The notes under the pieces are model-generated. The model did not search any database and was not told where the DNA came from. It worked only from the letters and a program-made list of their open reading frames with translations. From assembly GCF_000400465.1 (NCBI RefSeq), contig NW_008806274.1, forward strand, positions 90,244 through 122,243: a DNA stretch of 32,000 bases, read 5' to 3'. Numbering within the stretch: position 1 is the stretch's first letter; each line of letters begins with the position of its first letter. The translations under genes and the position numbers were made by a program. This stretch comes from Wallemia ichthyophaga EXF-994. Taxonomy: Eukaryota > Fungi > Basidiomycota. Positions 1-28,363 of the stretch are shown here, piece by piece.

Positions 1-129
1 AGACACGGCGGTAAGGGCAGCAAAGGCGGCCACGGTGGATACGGTGGACTCATTCTCGAGAAAGAAGTTCCAATTAACAAGTACTCTATCGGCCAGATCT
101 TCTCTATCAGATGCTCTGACTGGTCTTAG
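1..129 (+). CDS. Probable 3' end of a gene entering from upstream; Gly-rich tail (RHGGKGSKGGHGGYGGLILEKEVPINKYSIGQIFSIRCSDWS*)
   Basis: Frame 1 is open from base 1 to TAG at 127-129, with Gly-rich GGx repeats followed by AT-rich 3'-like sequence. Too short to identify. Confidence 0.3.
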   Translation, partial: RHGGKGSKGGHGGYGGLILEKEVPINKYSIGQIFSIRCSDWS

Positions 130-600: not shown

Positions 601-1296
601 TTAAACTGGAACACGCTTGAATCCACTACGCTTGGTGTATCCTGCTTGACGTTTATAATGATCATTTTCGTCACGCTTTGAAGCACCTCCTGCGAGATCA
701 CTGACGATTGGAATCTGACGCTTCATTGAGCCACCGCCGAGGAGCCTGTCTTCGTCAGCCTTCTGATTGGGTTTTGCGTCACGCTTTGAAGCACCTCCTG
801 CGAGATCACTGACGATTGGAATCTGACGCTTCATTAAGCTACCGCCGAGGAGCTTGTCTTCGTCAGCCTTCCCATCTGGTGTATTTGAAGTTGGCTTCGG
901 TGCTTCTGCAGCTTCAGCTGGTTTAGCGGAAGATGGGGAGGCCTTCTTGTCATCCATGTCAACTTCAGCTGACTTGGCAGGAGATGGAGAGTCACTAGAA
1001 GTCTTCTCGTCATCCTTGGCAGCTTCTTCCTCCATGGCTTGCTTGATTTGCTTCTTAGCCTCATCTGGAATGCCAGTCTCGACTGGGCGTGCACCCGTTG
1101 AGGAAGTTTCAGCTGGAGTCTCAGCCTTGGAAGTAGCCCATGCTGGTGGTTCGCTGAGAGTTTGATTTTTTAATGATCCTTCTGGTACCTCTAGCGTCTT
1201 GTCGAGACCTTGGAGTAAATCTCCGCCTTCTCCGCTTGGCATTTGCGCTAAGACTGCAGATATGAGTGCGAGTGCGGCGTATAACTTGAGATGCAT
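601..1296 (-). CDS. Secreted Kex2-processed repeat protein (KEP-like peptide precursor), 231 aa
   Basis: Intronless ORF. Hydrophobic signal peptide MHLKLYAALALISAVLA, acidic/Pro-Ser linker, then seven KR dibasic sites delimiting two identical QIPIVSDLAGGAS peptides plus short C-terminal peptides. Confidence 0.85.
   Translation of the reverse strand: MHLKLYAALALISAVLAQMPSGEGGDLLQGLDKTLEVPEGSLKNQTLSEPPAWATSKAETPAETSSTGARPVETGIPDEAKKQIKQAMEEEAAKDDEKTSSDSPSPAKSAEVDMDDKKASPSSAKPAEAAEAPKPTSNTPDGKADEDKLLGGSLMKRQIPIVSDLAGGASKRDAKPNQKADEDRLLGGGSMKRQIPIVSDLAGGASKRDENDHYKRQAGYTKRSGFKRVPV
669..871. repeat. Coding tandem duplication with a 108-nt period (669-763 and 777-871)
   Basis: Near-identical copies of cgtcacgctttgaagcacctcctgcgagatcactgacgattggaatctgacgcttcatt...cttcgtcagccttc, offset by exactly 108 nt (36 codons). 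Confidence 0.95.
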
Positions 1297-1668: not shown

Positions 1669-2448
1669 TTAGACCTTTCTGTATCCTGGTGGACTTCTCT
1701 TAACAGATGGGTTGCGTCTTTGGGCTTGCTGACTATCCTCTTGAGAGTCCATTTCTTGTTGTTGCTCCATCATTGGAGCTTCGGTTTGCTCTTGTTGATC
1801 TTCCTCTTGTGGTTGCTCCATCATTTGCTGTTCCTCAGCCTGTTCTTGAGATTGATCCATTTGTTGTTGTTCCTCAGCTGGCATCATTGATCCTTGCTCT
1901 TCTTGTGACTGTTCCTCACCTTCTTCTTGTTCTTGCTCTTGTGGCTGTTCCATCATTGGTTGCTCATCTTGTGATTGTTCCATCATTTGTGGTTGCTCAT
2001 CTTGTGCCATCTCTTGTTCTTCAGGTTGCATTTCCTCTTGTTGCATCTCCTGTTCTTCAGGCTGCATCACTTCTTCTTGCTCTTCCTGCTGCTGCATATC
2101 TTGCTCTGGATTCATTTCAGCAGTCGTAACATCGCTGCCTTCTTCATCCTTGGTGACATCAGGCTCAGCCTTTTTAGCTTCTTGAGCAGCAGCTTGAGCA
2201 GATGGCGATGCCATAGCAGAGCTGCTCGAAGATGCGGACGAGGATGTGGAAGTAGCGGTGGATGAAGGTGAAGTCATTGAGCTGGTTGATGTTGGTGTTG
2301 GTGTAACTGCAGGTGCAGCTGGGGATGCTGAGTCCATACCTGGGACCAATCCACCAAGTGCATCAGTAAGAGCGCCTAATGGACCCAATTGGGCGCTGGC
2401 TTGTGCTGCTAAAGCTGCAATGACACCGAGAGCTACGCTGAGACGCAT
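1669..2448 (-). CDS. Secreted, highly acidic Gln/Glu/Met-rich low-complexity protein (about 259 aa)
   Basis: ATG at 2448 gives signal peptide MRLSVALGVIAALAAQASA. It is followed by a Ser/Thr-rich segment (possible O-glycosylation) and a long Q/E-rich region with repeated QPEEQEM and MMEQ units. Confidence 0.8.
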   Translation of the reverse strand: MRLSVALGVIAALAAQASAQLGPLGALTDALGGLVPGMDSASPAAPAVTPTPTSTSSMTSPSSTATSTSSSASSSSSAMASPSAQAAAQEAKKAEPDVTKDEEGSDVTTAEMNPEQDMQQQEEQEEVMQPEEQEMQQEEMQPEEQEMAQDEQPQMMEQSQDEQPMMEQPQEQEQEEGEEQSQEEQGSMMPAEEQQQMDQSQEQAEEQQMMEQPQEEDQQEQTEAPMMEQQQEMDSQEDSQQAQRRNPSVKRSPPGYRKV

Positions 2449-5136: not shown

Positions 5137-8100
5137 ATGAAAGTGGGTGAATGATACAAGCGATGGAAATAAAACTTACAAAATAATTCAGATCGAGTTA
5201 CAAAGCTGGGTAGAGGCGTTGGAGAAGTACGATGCAGGCGACTATATCCACGCACTGCGCCAATTTTCAACGATGCAGAGCCGTGGACAGTCATCTAAGA
5301 TAGAGTTCAATAGGGCAGTTATACACGCTAGCCTTGGTGATCAAAAGGGTGCAACTGAGTTGTACAATTCATCACTACGCATTGACCCATACTTTGCAAT
5401 CGCCCACTTCCAATCAGGCGTTTGTAACTTTATGCGGGGCAGATATGAGCACGCGAGAAACGACTATGAAGCTAGCCAGGCGCAGCTTAGAGGGAATCCC
5501 CACATCGACTACAGTCAACTCGGCTTGGCTTACAAGTTAGAATCCGCAAATATAAACTTCAATATTGCTTTGACCTTTTACTACTCAGGCAGGCCTGATG
5601 ATGGTATAAGTCATATTCAATTAGCTAGAAATGGCGCGTCCCTCGACCAAAACAGCGTCATCGATGACTGCTTGCGTGATGAAGCTAAGGTACGCTCAAT
5701 CTCAGGCACGCGGTCTAGAACAACTAACAAATATTCATCCAGGGTTATATGCCTTACTCTGTTCAACCAGGCGTGGTTTTTAGACCTTCAGACTCTCAAA
5801 TAAAGAATCTTGAAAAGAAAGACTTCATTGGTCAGGCAAAAGTGGTTTACACTGACGATGACGGTACCAGTCCTGATATACCCCTCACTCAATCCAACAA
5901 TGACAACAAAGATGATGTTCCTCTCACTCGTAGATTACCCGGTGGTGGTGGTACTCTAAAGCGCAATCCAACTCATTGGCAGCCAAAACTACTCCGTCGT
6001 CCCACCCTTGGCTCTCGTAAACAAAGCAGCGCCGAAACAACTCCTGTGTCTTCTGGCGCTACAACTCCTGTCAATGAAAAGGGTGGCTTCTTCGGTCTCG
6101 TTAGACAGAAAACTGAACGCAGAAAGGCTCCAACTGAAGAAATGCGCACAAAGGCTGGTTTGACCCCTGATGAAGCTGCCACTGGTCCCAAGCAAGCTGC
6201 TATGCTTTCACGAGCACGCACCCTCGGTTCGGCTACTCTTGCAGAGAAGCGCTCCAAATCTGAACAAGATGTACCTTCTCAGGCCAATCAACAATCCCTT
6301 ACTGCCGCTGCTACTGCTACCACTGCTGATACTCACCCAAACAAGGGCTACACTCTGACAGATAATGGTAATAGTGATACTCCCTTTGCATCAGATACAG
6401 ACGAATCGCGTACTCCTTCACGTGCTCCTTCCCCTCCTCCTTACAATCATACACCTCAACCACATCAACCATCGAATTTGCATCACTCCCCTTCACAACC
6501 CCAGCTTGCACCTAGTAGAGCACGATTCCCAACTCGTAAAACATCACTGAGATATGTCAGTAGTAAATTCACTAAGAACGGTTCTTCAAATATACCTCGA
6601 CAGGAGATACGTAGATCGCGCTCGTTTAATGAGGGTGACGATTTTTCATTAGCTTATAATGTCTCAGATGGCAGTGAGATGCAGGCGACGAAGGCTACTC
6701 AATCGAATCAAGCTCCAACCAGGAGCAATACTCTTCTAAGCAAACTATCTGGCCGTTCAGGAGTCAATGACAGCAACATGAACATGAATCATGAACACCG
6801 TAAGGGCAAGCCACCTGCTATCAATACACTGTCCAATGTGCCAGCTGGTTGGCCACGCTCAGCTGACACAAGTCCACTCTCATTATTCCAGCAAACTCAA
6901 TCGCATAGAGCTCCCCAAATCCCTGCTCTCAGTATTGGCGATGCACTGATGCAAGCAGCAGAGCAAAAAGAAGAGCAGACAGCGGATGATGTGGTAGAGA
7001 AACCTGACCAAACAATGGAAAAAACTAGTCAGATAGAAGAATCAGAGGAATTGGAGCAAACACCAAAGCCTACTGAAAACATTGAATTGACTGTCACGCC
7101 ATCAACCCCATCACAAATGCCAGATAAGGACTTTTCAATTAAGTTTGATGAAAGGACTGACACTATGTACGATACGCAGAATGACACGTCGGTTCCATCT
7201 TCAGTGTCTGACAATTCCATGACCAATCCATCCAACGACTCTGGTGACAACAATGAGAGAGGATCACCGGTAGACGCGTTGACTACGTTGAGTGGTGGCA
7301 GTCCAAGTGCCCAAGGTGCCACAGGTGTCCATAGTGCTGCCAACGCTGGACCCTTCAAACAACCAGCACCACTTCAGGTCCAAGAAAAGCCAGCGCTGAG
7401 TCGCCAGGCTTCTGCATTGCGTAGACGCGGCACGTATGGCAAAGTACAAGAGCAGCATCAACAACAACATCAAACCCAACCAAAGCAAGGGATAGCTATC
7501 GACGTTTCTGACAAGATGCGCAAGATGGGCATAGAAGAGGGCAATGAGGAGAATGACGGGGGATTTGACTCGGCAATGATCAAGGGGATGTCGCCCGTAG
7601 AGCAGAGTTCACTGAATGCTGAGAGATTGCTTGAAAAGGGAGTGCGAGTGACGCCAGGTTCTTTGCATGCACAGACAGTGCTCGAGAGTTTGCAAGGTGT
7701 GAACGGTGCACCAATACTAACATCAATGCAACCAGCACAAGAAGTACACGGAATACCATCACCTACACCCCTACCTGCATCCACACCACCGAATGCCGCT
7801 TCTGCACCTCCACCACGGTCGCCGGAAAGCAAGTCGAGTAGATCAAATGGTTCTAGTCCACAATTGAAAGTGCGTTTTAAGATACATTACGGAGATGATG
7901 TGAGAGGGATGCTGGTTAGCAATGAGACTTCGTATGATGCCTTCTTGAATCACGTAAGTGGAGGTTAATTGATAGATAGCTGAATCTAACACTACCAAGA
8001 TACTCCGTAAGTTTGACAAAAGCGCTGGTAGCTTTAGAGTTCGATTCAAGGACGAAGATGGCGTTAAAATCACCGTTCAGGATCACTCTGATTTGGAACT

Positions 8101-14865: not shown

Positions 14866-15734
14866 ATGGAACACTGCTGCAAATACATCGCAAGCTTCTC
14901 CTCCCAAGCACCAAAAGGGATCGAATCTACCATCGCCGAGCATAAGGTGTACATAACATCCCCAGATCACTCACAGAACGATATCGTAGTTGTAATCATC
15001 CCTGATATTTTTGTAGGTGGTTGCTAGCTGCAGGGAATCCCTTTGACACTCCCACTCCGACTGCCAGGGATGGTCACTCACAAACACCCGCGTTCTCGCT
15101 GACGCTTACGCTGCACAAGCAGGCGTGCGTGTATACGTCCCAGACTTCTACGCCGGCGACCATGCACCATTCGACAAGACCGCACTGAAGAATTTGTGGG
15201 TGAGACACATTCTCATGCGCAAAAAATACTCAGACAAACTCCCCTTACAGCGACCTCAATCAGTTCATCAGCAAGCACCCCCCACGCGAGAAGCGCGACG
15301 AGGTGGAGCACGTAGCTAAAGCCATCAAAGAGTCCTCGAAAGCACACCGCTTGGCAGCTATCGGGTTCTGCTGGGGTGCCCCCTCTGCCCTCTACATGGG
15401 TCGTCAAGGAGGAGTGGCTGATGGCGTGTCTTTCGCCCACCCTTCGCTCGTTCAAGATGATGATTTTAGCGCTCTCGCCAAGCCTGCCATGTTCATCTGC
15501 GCGGAGCATGACCCCATTTTCACAAAGGAGATGGAAAACAAGGCGAGAAGTATCATGGCAGACAAGGCAAATACACAGGGTGATAACAGAGTTTACTCCA
15601 CTTGGCACACCTTCCTCGGTACTCAGCACCACTTTGCCACTCGTGGCGATGAAGACGATCCTTACACCGCTCGCGCTATGAAAGACGCCCAATGCCTCGC
15701 TAGCAACTTCTTCAAGAGCTTTCGCGGGGATTAG
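14866..15734 (+). CDS. Dienelactone hydrolase family alpha/beta-hydrolase, copy 1 (two introns)
   Basis: MEHCCKY...IPDIF|GWSLTNTRVLADAYA...VYVPDF, nucleophile GFCWG, AEHDPIF (Asp) and GTQHHF (His). Confidence 0.9.
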
Positions 15735-16017: not shown

Positions 16018-16825
16018 ATGGGAGACTGCTGCAAATACATCGGATCATTTTCCAAAGGCACGCCTAAGGGTATCGAGTCCACGATCGGCGGCTTGAAGAC
16101 TTATATCGCTTCACCAAGCCACGAGCAAGGCGATGTAGCTGTGCTGATGATTAGTGACATCTACGGCTGGGAGTTTGTGAACTCGCGTGTACTCGCCGAC
16201 ACATATGCCCAAGAATCGGGTGCGCGTGTTTATCTCCCCGATTTCCTGGACGGTGAATATGCACCAACGAGCGAAGACGGCAAGAAGAATTTGTGGGTGT
16301 AGCGTGCTTCACTCTAAGCAGATGATCTAACCAGCCTCACAATTACACAGCGATCTCGGTGCATTCATCGGCCGCCACCACCCACGTCAGCAGAAGGAGA
16401 AGGCGGAGCGTGTTGCACGCGATATTAAGGCGACGAGCAAGGCGAGAGTGTTGGTTGCAGGTGGTTATTGCTGGGGCGCACCAGCTGCCCTCTCTCTCTG
16501 CCAGAAGGATGGCGTGGCAGACGCTCTCCTCCTCGCTCACCCTACTCTCACTGAAGATGAGGACTTCGAAAACCTCACCAAGCCTGCTATGTTCATTTGC
16601 GCTGAACACGATCCTATATTTACCCCAGAGAAGGAGGACGCTGCGAGAAAGATCACCGCGAAGAAGGCTAATGCTAACGGCGACGACAGAGTTTACTCCA
16701 CTTGGCTCTCTTTCTTAGGAACCGGTCACGGCTTTAGCGTTAGAGGCGATGAGAACGACCCCTTCACTGCGAGAGCGATGCGTGATGCTCAGAAATTAGC
16801 TTGTAGTTTTTTCAAGACGATCTGA
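16018..16825 (+). CDS. Dienelactone hydrolase family alpha/beta-hydrolase, copy 2 (one intron)
   Basis: MGDCCKY...ISDIYGWEFVNSRVLADTYA...GYCWG...AEHDPIF...GTGHGFSVRG; colinear paralogue of copy 1. Confidence 0.9.
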
Positions 16826-18778: not shown

Positions 18779-19635
18779 TTACGCGTTATCCTGCACATCT
18801 GCCAGCCTTTGTTTGATGATCTCTCTGAGTTTGACACCTTCCGACTTTTTCAAACCGTGGCCAGCTTTAATACCCTTTGCAGCTTTAAATAGACCCTTGG
18901 GATGGCTGTTGTTGTTGTTGCCGCTATCGCCACCCTTATCTTCCTTATAAATGGCGTCACCAAGCGTGTCTAGTTGCTGGGCTAGCTCGCGAGATTCTTC
19001 GGGGAGGTGGATATAAAACTCAGCTCGTTTAATTAGATACTCCTCGAACATATTTGCATTTCGACTGTTCGCCTTCCAAGCAGCAAGAACAACGTCACCT
19101 GCGAGTGGAACCAAACCAAAAGCCACAGATACGATATTGTTAAACCAAGCATGATTTATAATACCAGCAGGTAGATCAAGGTTTTTTTCAGCTACTCGGA
19201 GCACTAAAAAGTAGTTAAGGAGAGCGTCCTGTAGGTTGAGGTGTGAGTAATGACGTCATATAAGGATAAGTGGTGTGTTCGCTGTGCTGGATGTGCTGTA
19301 AAGCAGAAAACACGCTCAACACACTCGAAAATTTCAGAACCCACCAGAACATCACCAAATCCAGGAATGAGACCGAAAATAAAAGTGTATCCGAATTGTA
19401 AACCACACAAATTGAATCCCTTATCGAGGCGATAAGCTCTCTTTCTAATTTTGGCAAGAGTGGCTTGGTCTTTCTTCGATAAGCCGAGAGGGATTTCCCG
19501 CTTCTTGGTCTGTGCGTTGCCGCTGTCATCCGTGTACTCCTCGTATAGCGGATTCCTAGGCCCCAAAGCCGCAACCTTATCGAAAACGTACTTTCCAGTG
19601 ACCTCGGCAACAACCTTTTTAACAATTGCAGACAT
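18779..19635 (-). CDS. DUF4112 family membrane protein (one intron)
   Basis: MSAIVKKVVAEV...PRNPLYEEY...KIRKRAYRLDKGFNLCGLQFGYTFIFGLIPGFGDV|...VAFGLVPLAGDVVLAAWKANSRNANMFEEYL, typical of the family as recalled. Confidence 0.85.
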
Positions 19636-19710
19636 TTGAATAAATTTGAGCTTATTTGGCCGTGATAGGAGTGGACCAACGAATAAAGACATCTTCTCTC
19701 CGCTGACATC

Positions 19711-20293
19711 ATGAGCGAGTCGATAAATATAAATATTCCAGAGCGTGGCAGGCAGCGTAGCAGCAGCGAGAGTGAGGCGGGTAGCAGCAACAGCTACAGC
19801 GCCAGCAACAGCAACAGCCACAGCACCAGCGTCAAGGCAGCATTACCCACAAGATCACCATTCAGTGCGCAGCCATTCAGGGAGTCAGCCACACATCAAA
19901 CATCCCCAACATCCCCAAAATCTACACCACCGCAGGCTCTGGCTATCCCACCGCCCAGGAGATTGTCTGGTAGCTTCGAGTTTAGTGGACAGCCATCGCC
20001 AGCAGCGAGCACAGGAAACACCAATGCAGCTGGAATATCGAACATGTTTAGACGCTTCTCATTTAAGGTGTGTCCTAGGATTATTACTGGTTTTTTTAAC
20101 GCGTTTATAGGGTACAAATCAGCCAGTAGCGAATAATACACTGAACACCATCCCCGCAAAACAGCCACTGCAGACGGAGATAACACCCACTCGCCCGCAA
20201 TCTCATAACAGAAGAAAGTCGGAGCAGAAGAGACCCGTATCTCCAATGGGTGAGCGTATCCTCCGCGGCAGCTTCGACGGCTCTGGATTTTGA
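19711..20293 (+). CDS. Ser-rich, probably disordered hypothetical protein with C-terminal motif RPVSPMGERILRGSFD (one intron, about 20068-20111)
   Basis: ORF 19711 ends at a donor after RRFSFK. The second exon reads GTNQPVANN...KRPVSPMGERILRGSFDGSGF* to TGA 20291-20293. Confidence 0.7.
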
Positions 20294-24202: not shown

Positions 24203-24693
24203 CTAATGTATTGTTATCCTCTTTGGCTCGGATTCTGGTGGGTGTCTTGAATATCTGAGCGTAAGCAGCCCATTCTCGTACGCAGCGTGGATATTATCTT
24301 CTGTAATGTGCTCGGGTAGCTTCCACGTCCTGCTCAGTGGTGTAGAAGGGCTGCGTTCGTTGATGACGCAATGTGACTTCTCGGACTTGTTTTCCTCGGA
24401 CTTCTGCTCTACTGGTTTGGTAGCTTTTACTGTAATGCCGTGGTCGTGGATCGATATGTCAACCTCCTCCTTCTTGCACCCAGCTAGATCGACTCTCGCT
24501 TCGTATGAGTTGCCGTATTGGATCAAATCGAGTCTTCGTATAGCATGTCAGCAGAGATACAACCCGTACAGACTACCACTTACCTCGCTCTAGATGTAGA
24601 AGGAGTGCTGTTACGCTTCACTGGCGCATTCTCAGTAAAAAAGAAGTCAAGTGGGAAATTGCGTTCGCTTGGTTGATTGTAAAATATGGTCAT
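24203..24693 (-). CDS. Small heat shock protein (HSP20/alpha-crystallin domain), one intron at 24534-24583
   Basis: MTIFYNQPSERNFPLDFFF...R|LDLIQYGNSYEARVDLAGCKKEEVDISI...INERS...LSRTWKLPE...IHAAYENGLLTL...PKRITIH*. Confidence 0.92.
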
Positions 24694-25297: not shown

Positions 25298-26037
25298 CTT
25301 TTTCAGTTTCACTTGCTCGAGCACTTGTTCGATTTGTTTCTGGTGCGCTTGCGCTTGAAATGTACAAATTGTCTTTATGGTGGTCACGACCAAGAACTAC
25401 CACTCAGTATCGCCCTGATTTTATAACCGCCCTGATTGATATTTTGATGGCCGAAGTACGTCCACGTCACAAAGCGTGACCGGTGTGATTATGTGGGGGT
25501 GTAAGCTGCTGAGCAGTGTTGTGCAGATGTCCTTTTCGAGCAATGTGCAAACTAGCTTTCATGCTTCTCTTGGCGCCTTTCTCTTATCAGATGACTCAAT
25601 GCGATGACACAGGTCGTTGTCAATGCTGTGATTCTGACGCCATCAACTTTACTGAAAGAGCCCTTTTTGATGACTTTTACTCTGTTCCATTGCTTGATTA
25701 CGCTCATCCTCAATTAACTTCAGGCACCCTCCCAAATAATCGGGCGGCATCATCAAAGATGCTCGGAGTTGAACTTGGTATACCGGGACCGAAATTAACT
25801 AAAAAGCTACACTAAATCTATAGCGCACTCCTCAATTTACTCCGGACCGAATCCGCAAACAAAGATGGTGCCATCAGATAGCTGATATCTGATCTTTAAT
25901 AAATTGAAAGTAATTCAGTGACATTGGATGGACTTTGGAGATCAAGGGATCTATGAACTGGTAGAAGACCTTTGATAATGACGATCTTTGCCTCACTAGA
26001 TGTAGCTATTGACTCAACACCCAAGTCTTGCTCACTC

Positions 26038-26444
26038 ATGTGGATTGATGTATTATTTTACTGTTTAGTCTTAATTGCGACTAAAGCGAGTCAATCCTCT
26101 CACCAGAAAGACGCACAAGTCAGCACAAGCGATTAGAGTCAACTTTATATTAACATCTATACAAAGAATGGTATGATACATTCAATTACTCTAAACTCTA
26201 AGCTGTGAAAAAGCAAATAGAGATAAGACAAAGTGTTTTGCCTTGGGTTTTAGCTAATAGAACGGGACTCACAAACGTCGATAATGATGTATTTAATCTT
26301 GGTATTTCCGAGGCTGTTGACAGGGTGGCAAGATTGCCAAACCTTGAAGAGATCTCTCAGTATCAAGAAGTTACTTCCGAAACGCATGCAAGACATGCTC
26401 GAGCTTCTTTGGATATAGTTTTAGATGTTCTCAAGAAAATGTAA
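26038..26444 (+). CDS. Probable small secreted protein (about 102-108 aa) with a 4-nt microexon
   Basis: Exon 1 MWIDVLFYCLVLIATKASQSSHQKDAQ (signal-like), intron 26119-26166, microexon AATG 26167-26170, then an intron to the acceptor at 26202 or 26220. Either acceptor joins in frame to ORF 26205-26444. Confidence 0.5.
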
Positions 26445-26852
26445 AACTCCTAGTGACTTGCTCATTTGATTTTGTAATGCTGCATTTTGGTTTTACGTGT
26501 TTGGTTTTTAATTTTTTGTTAAAGTATATTGAATTGATTTCTGTACATATAGTGAAAAATATTATAATTATACATAACTATACATGGCTATAAATGGCTA
26601 CAAACAGCTATACAAATACCTTTTTATCGATAAGCTTCTGAGAGCGCGTGACGGGATGTCACTTCGGGAATGGTTAGCTTAGGTTAGTCATGCACAATGC
26701 CGCGCATGTGCACTCCCTTTCAATTGGGATGATAGAAGATTCGCTATTTACACCTAATTGGCTTAGCTGCGTTTCATTACTATGTATTTGAAATGACTAT
26801 AATCTTCACTACTACTACATCAAGCGCCTAAAGCAACTAATAACCCTTTTCA

Positions 26853-28363
26853 TTAACGATCAACCTCACCAAAGACTAAATCGCTCGTCCCTATGATCGC
26901 GCTGAAAATTTTCAATAAGCTATATGTGGCTATGGAAGACAGTTACTTACACCATGTCAGGGAGGAAATGGTGGCGCGACATAAAGTCAGCACCAGCCAA
27001 ATGTGCAAAGCCAGGCGCGCGGATCTTGCACTTGTAAGGTCTGTTGGTGCCGTCGCTGATGAGATGCACCGCCATTTCGCCCTTTGGCGCCTCGATAGCA
27101 GAGTAAGTCTCACCCGCAGGCACTGCATAACCCTCCGAGAAAAGCTTGAAGTGGTGTATCAAGCTCTCCATCGACTCCTTCATCGACGCGCGTGGTGGAG
27201 GGACAATCTTGTGGTCGTCGATCTTGTACGGTCCAGGCGGCATCTTGTTGCAACACTGCCCGATGATTCTGATGGCCTCTCTCATCTCCTGGATACGGCA
27301 GATGTAGCGGTCGTAGCAGTCGCCGTTCTCCCCGACCGGTATGTCAAAGTCGACCTCGTCGTACTTCTCGTATGGCTGCGTCTTGCGCAGATCCCATGGG
27401 ATACCGGAGCCACGCAGCATCGGGCCTGAGAAACAGTAGTCGAGGGCCTCGTCCGCTGTCACTCTACCGACACCGATGGTACGCTCTTTCCAGATACGGT
27501 TGCCGGTGACAATCTCTTCAATCTCGTCAATGCGCGAGCTGAACTGGGTCGCCCACTTGTGAATGTCCTCGAGGAGGCCGTGGGGAAGGTCGAACGCTAC
27601 ACCACCCGGGCGGATGTATGCGGCATGGAGACGCGCGCCGGAGACTCTCTCGTAGAACTCCATCAGCTTCTCTCTCTCTTCGAAACCGTAAAGGAAGGGA
27701 GTGAGTGCACCGACATCCATGGCGTGTGAGAGGACAGCCATGATGTGGTTAAGAATGCGGGTGATTTCGGAGAAGAGAGTGCGAATCCACTTTGCGCGCT
27801 CTGGGACATCAATGTTGAGCAGCTTCTCGACGGCTTTGGTGTACGAGAGTTCGTTGGTCATGGCGGAGGAGTAGTCGAGACGGTCCATGTAGGGGAGCGC
27901 CTGGACGTAGTTCTTGTACTCCATCAGCTTCTCAGTACCGCGGTGGAGAAGACCAATGTGTGGATCGGCTCTGAGGATTTCTTCACCGTTAAGCTCGAGG
28001 ATGAGACGGAGGACACCGTGGGCAGCTGGGTGCTGGGGACTGTGTGGTGGATGTGTTAGCGTGTGTGTGTGCGTGTGTGCGTGTGTAGCCACCGCAACTC
28101 CAAACGCACCCAAAGTTAACTGCACAACTAGTGAGCTATTTGAACACAAAATGAACATTATACGCACCCGTAAAATGACGTAAATCTGCGTCTTTTCTGT
28201 CGCCGCTCTCTTTGAGAATATCCTCTGCACTTAAATCGTGCATATCCTCAACAGTGGCAGAGCTCGAGGCTCTGCTCGATGTACTGAATCTACTGAGATT
28301 GCTGGTAGCAGCCACTGGCTTTGGAAATTTCAAGCAATTCCTTATTGAGTTGAAACGAAGCAT
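26853..28363 (-). CDS. NDUFS2: Mitochondrial complex I 49 kDa subunit (NDUFS2/NuoD homologue)
   Basis: [76 protein letters not shown] and terminal DLVFGEVDR* at 26853-26855. Confidence 0.97.
28058..28086. repeat. Imperfect (GT/CA)n microsatellite in an NDUFS2 intron
   Basis: gcgtgtgtgtgtgcgtgtgtgcgtgtgtag. The ORF track translates it spuriously as THAHTHTHT. Confidence 0.85.

Follow-up and report, generated by a model that had tools for sequence, protein, structure and literature searches.

A gene of the obligate halophile Wallemia ichthyophaga encodes a protein in which one 13-residue peptide stands twice between Lys-Arg (KR) pairs, which raises the question of whether the protein is a precursor cut at these pairs by a Kex2-type protease and, if so, whether the released peptides or another part of the protein are the functional product. 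The locus was analyzed within a 32,000-nt stretch of strain EXF-994 (contig NW_008806274.1, positions 90,244 to 122,243), referred to here as the window, whose numbering is used for all nucleotide positions unless another locus is named.

GME51_g is a transcribed, salt-induced gene

Positions 601 to 1296 of the window (minus strand) hold an intronless open reading frame (ORF) of 231 codons that begins with ATG and is closed by a stop codon at 601 to 603. An identical 231-aa, single-exon gene is called on scaffold KE007224.1 of assembly GCA_000400465.1, listed as W. ichthyophaga EXF-994 in the strain table of Umemura (PMC7329392), and two further assemblies encode the identical protein. In Table S6 of Zajc et al. 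2013 (PMC3849046), this protein is GME51_g, with a gene length of 696 nt and RPKM values of 9.9 at 10% NaCl and 23.2 at 30% NaCl (log2 ratio, 1.23; FDR, 1e-17), corresponding to an induction of about 2.3-fold at 30% NaCl. Although modest (RPKM 10 to 23), this expression, together with the annotated single exon, identifies GME51_g as a real, transcribed gene, and the objection of a missing transcript, which the preliminary description had named as grounds for abandoning its proposal, therefore fails. The predicted signal peptide, the two MKR-QIPIVSDLAGGAS-KR units, the 108-nt duplication, and the KR-bearing tail are likewise present in the sequence exactly as first described.

GME51_g encodes a putative secretory protein with a KR-rich tail

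The predicted signal peptide, MHLKLYAALALISAVLA (aa 1 to 17; 1246 to 1296, minus strand), was called by manual, heuristic criteria (charge, hydropathy, and the residues before Q18) and comprises a basic n-region (K4), an uncharged h-region (L5 to A17) with a mean Kyte-Doolittle hydropathy of up to 2.7, and V-L-A before Q18, where the cut is predicted. AVLAQ at this junction is invariant across all aligned orthologues. All further elements are encoded on the same strand. The conserved N-terminal region (aa 18 to 93; 1018 to 1245), delimited by alignment, dN/dS, and a helix in the AlphaFold2 model, holds the invariant stretches PEGSLKNQTLSEPPAWATSK, GARPVETG, and AKKQIKQA (predicted helix, 78 to 92), as well as an invariant N-glycosylation sequon, N44-Q-T (1159 to 1167). 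It is followed by an acidic, disordered linker rich in Ser, Pro, Ala, and Lys (aa 94 to 143; 868 to 1017), the length of which differs among species, and by the conserved pre-cleavage segment ADEDKLLGGSLMKR (aa 144 to 157; 826 to 867), which ends with the first KR. The first copy of the core, QIPIVSDLAGGAS (aa 158 to 170; 787 to 825), then precedes a KR at 781 to 786, a spacer, DAKPNQKADEDRLLGGGSMKR (aa 173 to 193; 718 to 780), with the third KR site at its end, and the second core copy (aa 194 to 206; 679 to 717), which precedes a KR at 673 to 678. Three more KR sites lie in the C-terminal tail DENDHY-KR-QAGYT-KR-SGF-KR-VPV (aa 209 to 231; 604 to 672).

Without the signal peptide, GME51_g has 214 residues, among them 24 Lys and 9 Arg, a composition from which 1.0 KR dipeptide is expected. 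The protein contains seven, a number not attained in any of 100,000 shuffles (P < 1e-5). All seven sites fall within residues 156 to 228, i.e., in the last 76 aa, and seven of the nine Arg residues of the protein stand in KR. Gln occupies P1' at three of the seven sites, and the predicted mature N terminus (Q18) is a Gln as well, while the first KR site has Leu at P4 (L-M-K-R, with L-L-K-R in relatives). Hydrophobic stretches, with a 9-residue mean hydropathy above 0.8, occur only in the signal peptide and in the two cores. The core peptide had initially been called amphipathic, a property that was not established, since QIPIVSDLAGGAS is simply hydrophobic (GRAVY, 0.74). In the AlphaFold2 model, the mean pLDDT is 50.5 and helices occur only in the signal peptide, at 31 to 34 (short), and at 78 to 92, which suggests a disordered protein, although the input alignment held four sequences and a poor model was to be expected anyway. 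Disorder of the KR region would leave its sites accessible. The predicted N-terminal fragment, of 138 aa, has a net charge of -12 and a pI of 4.4.

The family is restricted to Wallemia, and its N-terminal part is the most conserved

Every relative of GME51_g that a word-indexed search of 5.8 billion proteins returned came from Wallemia (W. hederae, W. mellicola, and one related species found in Logan read assemblies). When 1.84 billion representatives were searched exhaustively with an HMMER profile, Wallemia proteins again turned up, plus one outside match. The latter (E = 3.7e-5), a 3082-aa bacterial RTX-repeat protein, was rejected as spurious, with a GxGxDLIQG-like motif overlapping the GME51_g signal peptide. 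Neither a Pfam scan nor a PDB profile search with GME51_g gave a match, and a scan of metagenome contigs added no orthologues. The orthologues have the same neighbors in each species: MTO1/GidA, together with another secreted acidic protein, flanks the gene at one end, and protein disulfide isomerase and trehalose-6-phosphate synthase flank it at the other. The family is restricted to the genus Wallemia and keeps the same syntenic position.

The orthologue alignment revealed conservation of the signal peptide, the N-terminal region, the NQT sequon, and the motif D-x-K-L-L-G-G-x-L-(L/M)-K-R, with K156 and R157 of the first KR site and KR215-216 invariant across species. Between species, dN/dS is 0.10 to 0.17 in the N-terminal region (aa 18 to 93) and about 0.15 to 0.19 in the segment before the first KR (aa 144 to 157). 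Past this site (aa 158 to 231), the three lineages are effectively unalignable and dN/dS is meaningless (pN, about 0.55), and in the close pair formed by W. mellicola and a Logan species, it is 0.095. By alignment and dN/dS, the most conserved part of GME51_g is its N-terminal region and not the peptides, the reverse of classical peptide-hormone precursors, where conservation falls on the peptides.

When the core itself, QIPIVSDLAGGAS, was compared with the orthologues and scored against shuffles, no significant match emerged in W. hederae (P = 0.45) or W. mellicola (P = 0.79), and a by-eye likeness between IPIVSDL and NPVSNLL in the orthologous tails was discarded, as it was not significant against shuffles. 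Divergence of the core in orthologues was an outcome that the preliminary description had itself named as speaking against its proposal, and the notion of a conserved bioactive core therefore had to be given up: what the orthologues share is the N-terminal region and DxKLLGGxL(L/M)KR. Since the core is unrecognizable in the orthologues, conservation of exactly this sequence as a bioactive peptide is excluded outside W. ichthyophaga, and the 13-mer is specific to this species. In W. hederae and W. mellicola, the terminal peptide also begins with Gln; the two peptides are alike (shuffle P = 0.017), and that of W. mellicola, QGGGSGSNANPLGGLGKLLGQRGYVV, is invariant in six alleles. KR number and tail positions vary between species. 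Judging from the sequences, the conserved architecture consists of a signal peptide, a sequon-bearing pro-region, L-x-K-R, a KR-rich tail, and a Gln-initiated peptide rich in Gly, Ala, Ser, Leu, and Pro.

The W. mellicola gene models (locus L010, 6001 to 6752) carry a 16-aa N-terminal extension, MFNCLATTYNFTLSSE, joined via a predicted intron, while the uninterrupted ORF begins with MQLKQLALL (L010, 6108). This extension buries the W. mellicola signal peptide, so that secretome and KEP (Kex2-processed repeat protein) pipelines would miss such entries.

The core peptide lies on a 108-nt tandem duplication

The two copies of the tandem duplication lie at 773 to 880 (copy 1, upstream in the coding sense) and 665 to 772 (copy 2), both on the minus strand, with a period of 108 nt and 93% identity (TRF score, 384; 96% matches). 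Each copy encodes ...ADED(K/R)LLGG(SL/GS)MKR-QIPIVSDLAGGAS-KR-D. The copies differ at 8 nt, all of them outside a 59-nt identical run that corresponds to MKR-QIPIVSDLAGGAS-KR-D, and a run of this length has a probability of 0.012 given eight random differences. Seven of the eight differences are at codon positions 1 or 2, and six alter the amino acid. Since the identical core is free of synonymous differences too, its identity can be attributed to gene conversion or to a recent event just as well as to selection on the peptide. The duplication is specific to W. ichthyophaga.

The repeat number is two in the reference and in two other assemblies. In at least five short-read assemblies of W. ichthyophaga, contigs break at the identical base inside the duplication (position 6580, about 717 in the window), and because five contigs end at the same base, this is an assembly artifact rather than copy-number variation among strains. 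A 193-aa database protein is GME51_g cut off by such a contig break inside the duplication. With short-read assemblies breaking in the repeat, the true copy number in W. ichthyophaga could conceivably exceed two. All eight W. ichthyophaga strain loci, five of which cover only the first 580 nt, are identical in the coding sequence and thus carry no population signal.

Proposed processing of GME51_g

We consider it fairly likely that the Wallemia-specific GME51_g is a disordered secretory pre-pro-protein that works like a KEP. Signal peptidase would cut after A17, and the protein would pass through the endoplasmic reticulum, with N-glycosylation at the invariant N44-Q-T. In the late Golgi, the single kexin would act on all seven KR pairs of the C-terminal part, cutting behind each of them, a Kex1-type carboxypeptidase would remove the trailing Lys and Arg, and each N-terminal Gln would be converted to pyroglutamate (pGlu). 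We infer this route, from signal peptidase through Kex2 and Kex1 to Gln cyclization, from the KR sites, the presence of a kexin, and the KR-Q pyroglutamyl precedents in Coprinopsis cinerea. PF01483, the kexin/furin P-domain, occurs in a single W. ichthyophaga protein (Table S1 of Zajc et al., PMC3849046). In C. cinerea, KR-Q junctions of KEPs give fully pyroglutamylated peptides, verified with synthetic standards, and the basidiomycete KEP peptides verified by mass spectrometry include pyro-QVPVDEPA and pyro-QIPAELPTKSINGNIEPY; knockouts of C. cinerea kep genes had no phenotype (PMC9769878).

By analogy with these peptides, GME51_g probably yields pGlu-IPIVSDLAGGAS. Each precursor would give rise to an acidic, glycosylated N-terminal fragment of 138 aa, pGlu-IPIVSDLAGGAS in two copies (monoisotopic mass, 1209.62), an acidic spacer of 19 aa, and a few very short peptides (3 to 6 residues); DAKPNQKADEDRLLGGGSM is another peptide predicted from GME51_g. 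The two-copy state would have arisen by duplication within a rapidly evolving tail, whose KR sites and peptides would turn over between species. As a guess, the hydrophobic 13-mer, the conserved N-terminal fragment, or both may have an extracellular role, in signaling or at the cell surface. A bolder reading, conceivable but in our estimate very unlikely, makes the salt-induced pGlu-IPIVSDLAGGAS an extracellular effector peculiar to this lineage. The peptide would have emerged in W. ichthyophaga, an obligate halophile, and been duplicated there; active at surfaces, associated with the wall, or serving as an autocrine signal, it would play a part in the unusual growth of the species as thick-walled multicellular clumps near NaCl saturation. 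In that case, GME51_g would exemplify a bioactive peptide born de novo within a conserved cassette for Kex2 processing.

GME51_g compared with known Kex2-processed precursors

KEPs are very common in fungi, with 7878 in 1345 strains (Umemura 2020, PMC7329392). For W. ichthyophaga EXF-994, the two surveys give 6 (Le Marquer 2019, PMC6339444) or 7 (Umemura, PMC7329392), and in relation to the size of its secretome, Wallemia/W. ichthyophaga was noted as rich in KEPs (PMC6339444). QIPIVSDLAGGAS was not found in the supplement text of the two surveys, as far as that text was accessible (PMC6339444, PMC7329392). Like KEPs, GME51_g has a predicted signal peptide and repeats a short KR-flanked peptide without change in an apparently disordered precursor; moreover, most KEP types are unique at the genus level and the majority lack neighboring tailoring enzymes, and the same holds for GME51_g. 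It differs by its long, well-conserved N-terminal region of ~140 aa and by several nonrepeated KR-bounded fragments. Both surveys require at least three repeats (in that of Umemura, at least three tandem repeats of at least 8 aa; PMC6339444, PMC7329392), whereas GME51_g has only two and thus falls outside the operational definition of a KEP. Considering that this threshold is a filter against false positives and not a biological boundary, we class GME51_g as KEP-like, and it is best read as a lineage-specific, low-copy precursor, new to a class that is already known.

The closest precedent for the proposed peptide ends is C. cinerea KEP 497993 with its agaricomycete homologues, in which KR-Q junctions give pGlu-(V/I)-Pro peptides (Vogt et al. 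2022, PMC9769878), the corresponding junction of GME51_g being KR-Q-I-P-I-V. The profile search, in which only Wallemia proteins were accepted as relatives, detected no homology between the two. The prepro-alpha-factor of Saccharomyces cerevisiae (MFalpha1) likewise combines a signal peptide, an N-glycosylated pro-region (in GME51_g, the sequon only), an aliphatic P4 (L-x-K-R), and peptides separated by KR, but its Ste13 spacers (Glu/Asp-Ala) and its link to mating are absent in GME51_g, the sequences are not similar, and the pro-region of GME51_g is more conserved than its peptides. Rep1 of Ustilago maydis is also a secreted basidiomycete protein cut at KR, with peptides that act at the cell surface; it differs in giving many peptides (about 10 or more, of roughly 35 to 55 aa; given as 37 aa long in PMC6339444), against two 13-mers in GME51_g, and shows no similarity to it. 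Candida albicans Ece1 resembles GME51_g in having a signal peptide and a string of KR-terminated, mostly nonidentical fragments, one of which is known to be active, but it is not homologous, and the GME51_g fragments are much shorter, with no evident amphipathic helical peptide among them.

If GME51_g is processed as proposed, a Wallemiomycetes-specific family would join the catalogue of fungal Kex2-derived linear peptides, and the filters of at least three repeats used in KEP surveys would miss low-copy precursors. The family would combine a conserved scaffold (signal peptide, glycosylated pro-region, and first L-x-K-R) with released peptides that are replaced and duplicated between species. 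To our knowledge, pheromones, repellents, and one toxin are the only KEP-derived linear peptides with a demonstrated function; this and the modest expression of GME51_g limit the practical value of the finding.

Alternative explanations

The strong constraint on the N-terminal region makes this region a serious candidate for the functional product. The conserved fragment of ~140 aa (acidic, N-glycosylated, and disordered) might be what the gene provides, with the KR tail as a disposable pro-region or a fast-evolving appendage and the peptides without function, which we regard as possible but doubtful. Such an explanation would fit the location of the strongest constraint (dN/dS, 0.10 to 0.17) and of the long invariant stretches with the NQT sequon, the lack of conservation of the core peptide among species, and the shifting number and positions of KR in the tail. 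However, the tail is constrained at short range (dN/dS, 0.095) and does not vary within W. mellicola, whose terminal Q-peptide is still similar to that of W. hederae (P = 0.017), the core and its flanking KR are identical in both copies while the spacers have diverged (P = 0.012), and the N-terminal region has no fold predicted by AlphaFold2. A KR pair alone is no guarantee of cleavage, and GME51_g could also remain a full-length secreted or wall-associated disordered protein whose KR cluster, for example, binds anionic wall polymers. The AlphaFold2 model, of low confidence throughout, would fit a charged disordered protein, but the concentration of seven of nine Arg residues in KR where about one KR is expected, the aliphatic or small residues at P4/P3 of the conserved first site (L-M/L-K-R), the recurrence of Gln at P1', the accessibility of a disordered region, and the presence of a kexin all make uncleaved pairs improbable.

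A signal peptide and repeats bounded by KR are also common to precursors of the UstA and alpha-factor types (PMC7329392, PMC6339444), so that GME51_g might encode the precursor of a modified cyclic RiPP of the dikaritin type or a mating pheromone. Genes for DUF3328/UstYa, tyrosinase, methyltransferase, and P450 are absent from the window and its flanks, and QIPIVSDLAGGAS has no aromatic residue and hence no Tyr for an ether cross-link. Pfam scans of 37 window ORFs (at least 60 to 110 aa) and of the flanking called genes thus bore out the earlier statement that neither DUF3328/UstYa (PF11807) nor tyrosinase is encoded in the window, and because no tailoring enzyme was found in these ORFs and flanking genes, a linear peptide is more likely than a dikaritin, as had been proposed. 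With regard to a pheromone, KR is followed by Q-I, D-A(K), D-E, S-G, or V-P, with no repeated XA/XP runs for Ste13, no pheromone-receptor or homeodomain ORF occurs in the window, and basidiomycete pheromones are not derived from KEPs (PMC6339444). W. ichthyophaga has been reported to have no discernible MAT locus. Both versions are largely refuted, and we give them next to no credence.

Gene neighborhood of GME51_g

The window genes encode housekeeping functions only, namely, MTO1, a TPR/PB1 protein, ERG24, dUTPase, dienelactone hydrolases, an AAA protein, a DUF4112 protein, a BRCT protein, HSP20, the 49-kDa subunit of NADH dehydrogenase, and SWIB and WD40 proteins. GME51_g is adjoined by GME52_g (1669 to 2448, minus strand), which encodes a 259-aa acidic protein with a signal-peptide-like start, an extremely Gln/Glu/Met-rich composition, internal repeats of 30 to 36 nt (TRF, 1937 to 2088), a tail reading RR-NPSV-KR-SPPGY-RK-V, and no Pfam match. 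GME52_g keeps its syntenic position in other Wallemia species. In contrast to GME51_g, it is expressed less at high salt, with the RPKM falling from 239 to 59 at 30% NaCl. A paralogous relationship of the two genes was considered and rejected (BLASTP, E = 18).

At the other side of GME51_g, positions 1 to 129 (plus strand) hold the 3' end of a large convergent ORF where no gene is called in the reference. In the reference scaffold, this ORF occupies the syntenic position of the W. mellicola metallophosphatase (PF00149) gene, and it (locus L006, 7168 to 10599, minus strand) runs into many tandem His/Gly/Asp-rich DGYPGRPGRPGHGGNGGHGGHGHDGEDGDDGR units, with an assembly gap between. Farther along the window, ORFs at 15303 to 15731 and 16448 to 16822 (both plus strand) each match the C-terminal half of PF01738 (dienelactone hydrolase) and look like a tandem pair. 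The small heat shock protein of the HSP20/alpha-crystallin family (24206 to 24526, minus strand; E = 6e-18) lies in ORF-poor surroundings of lower GC content (0.375 at 26001 to 27000), and a CAGCAA hexanucleotide microsatellite of the poly-Gln type (19785 to 19830) marks the upstream end of the ORF that matches DUF4112 (19207 to 19821, minus strand).
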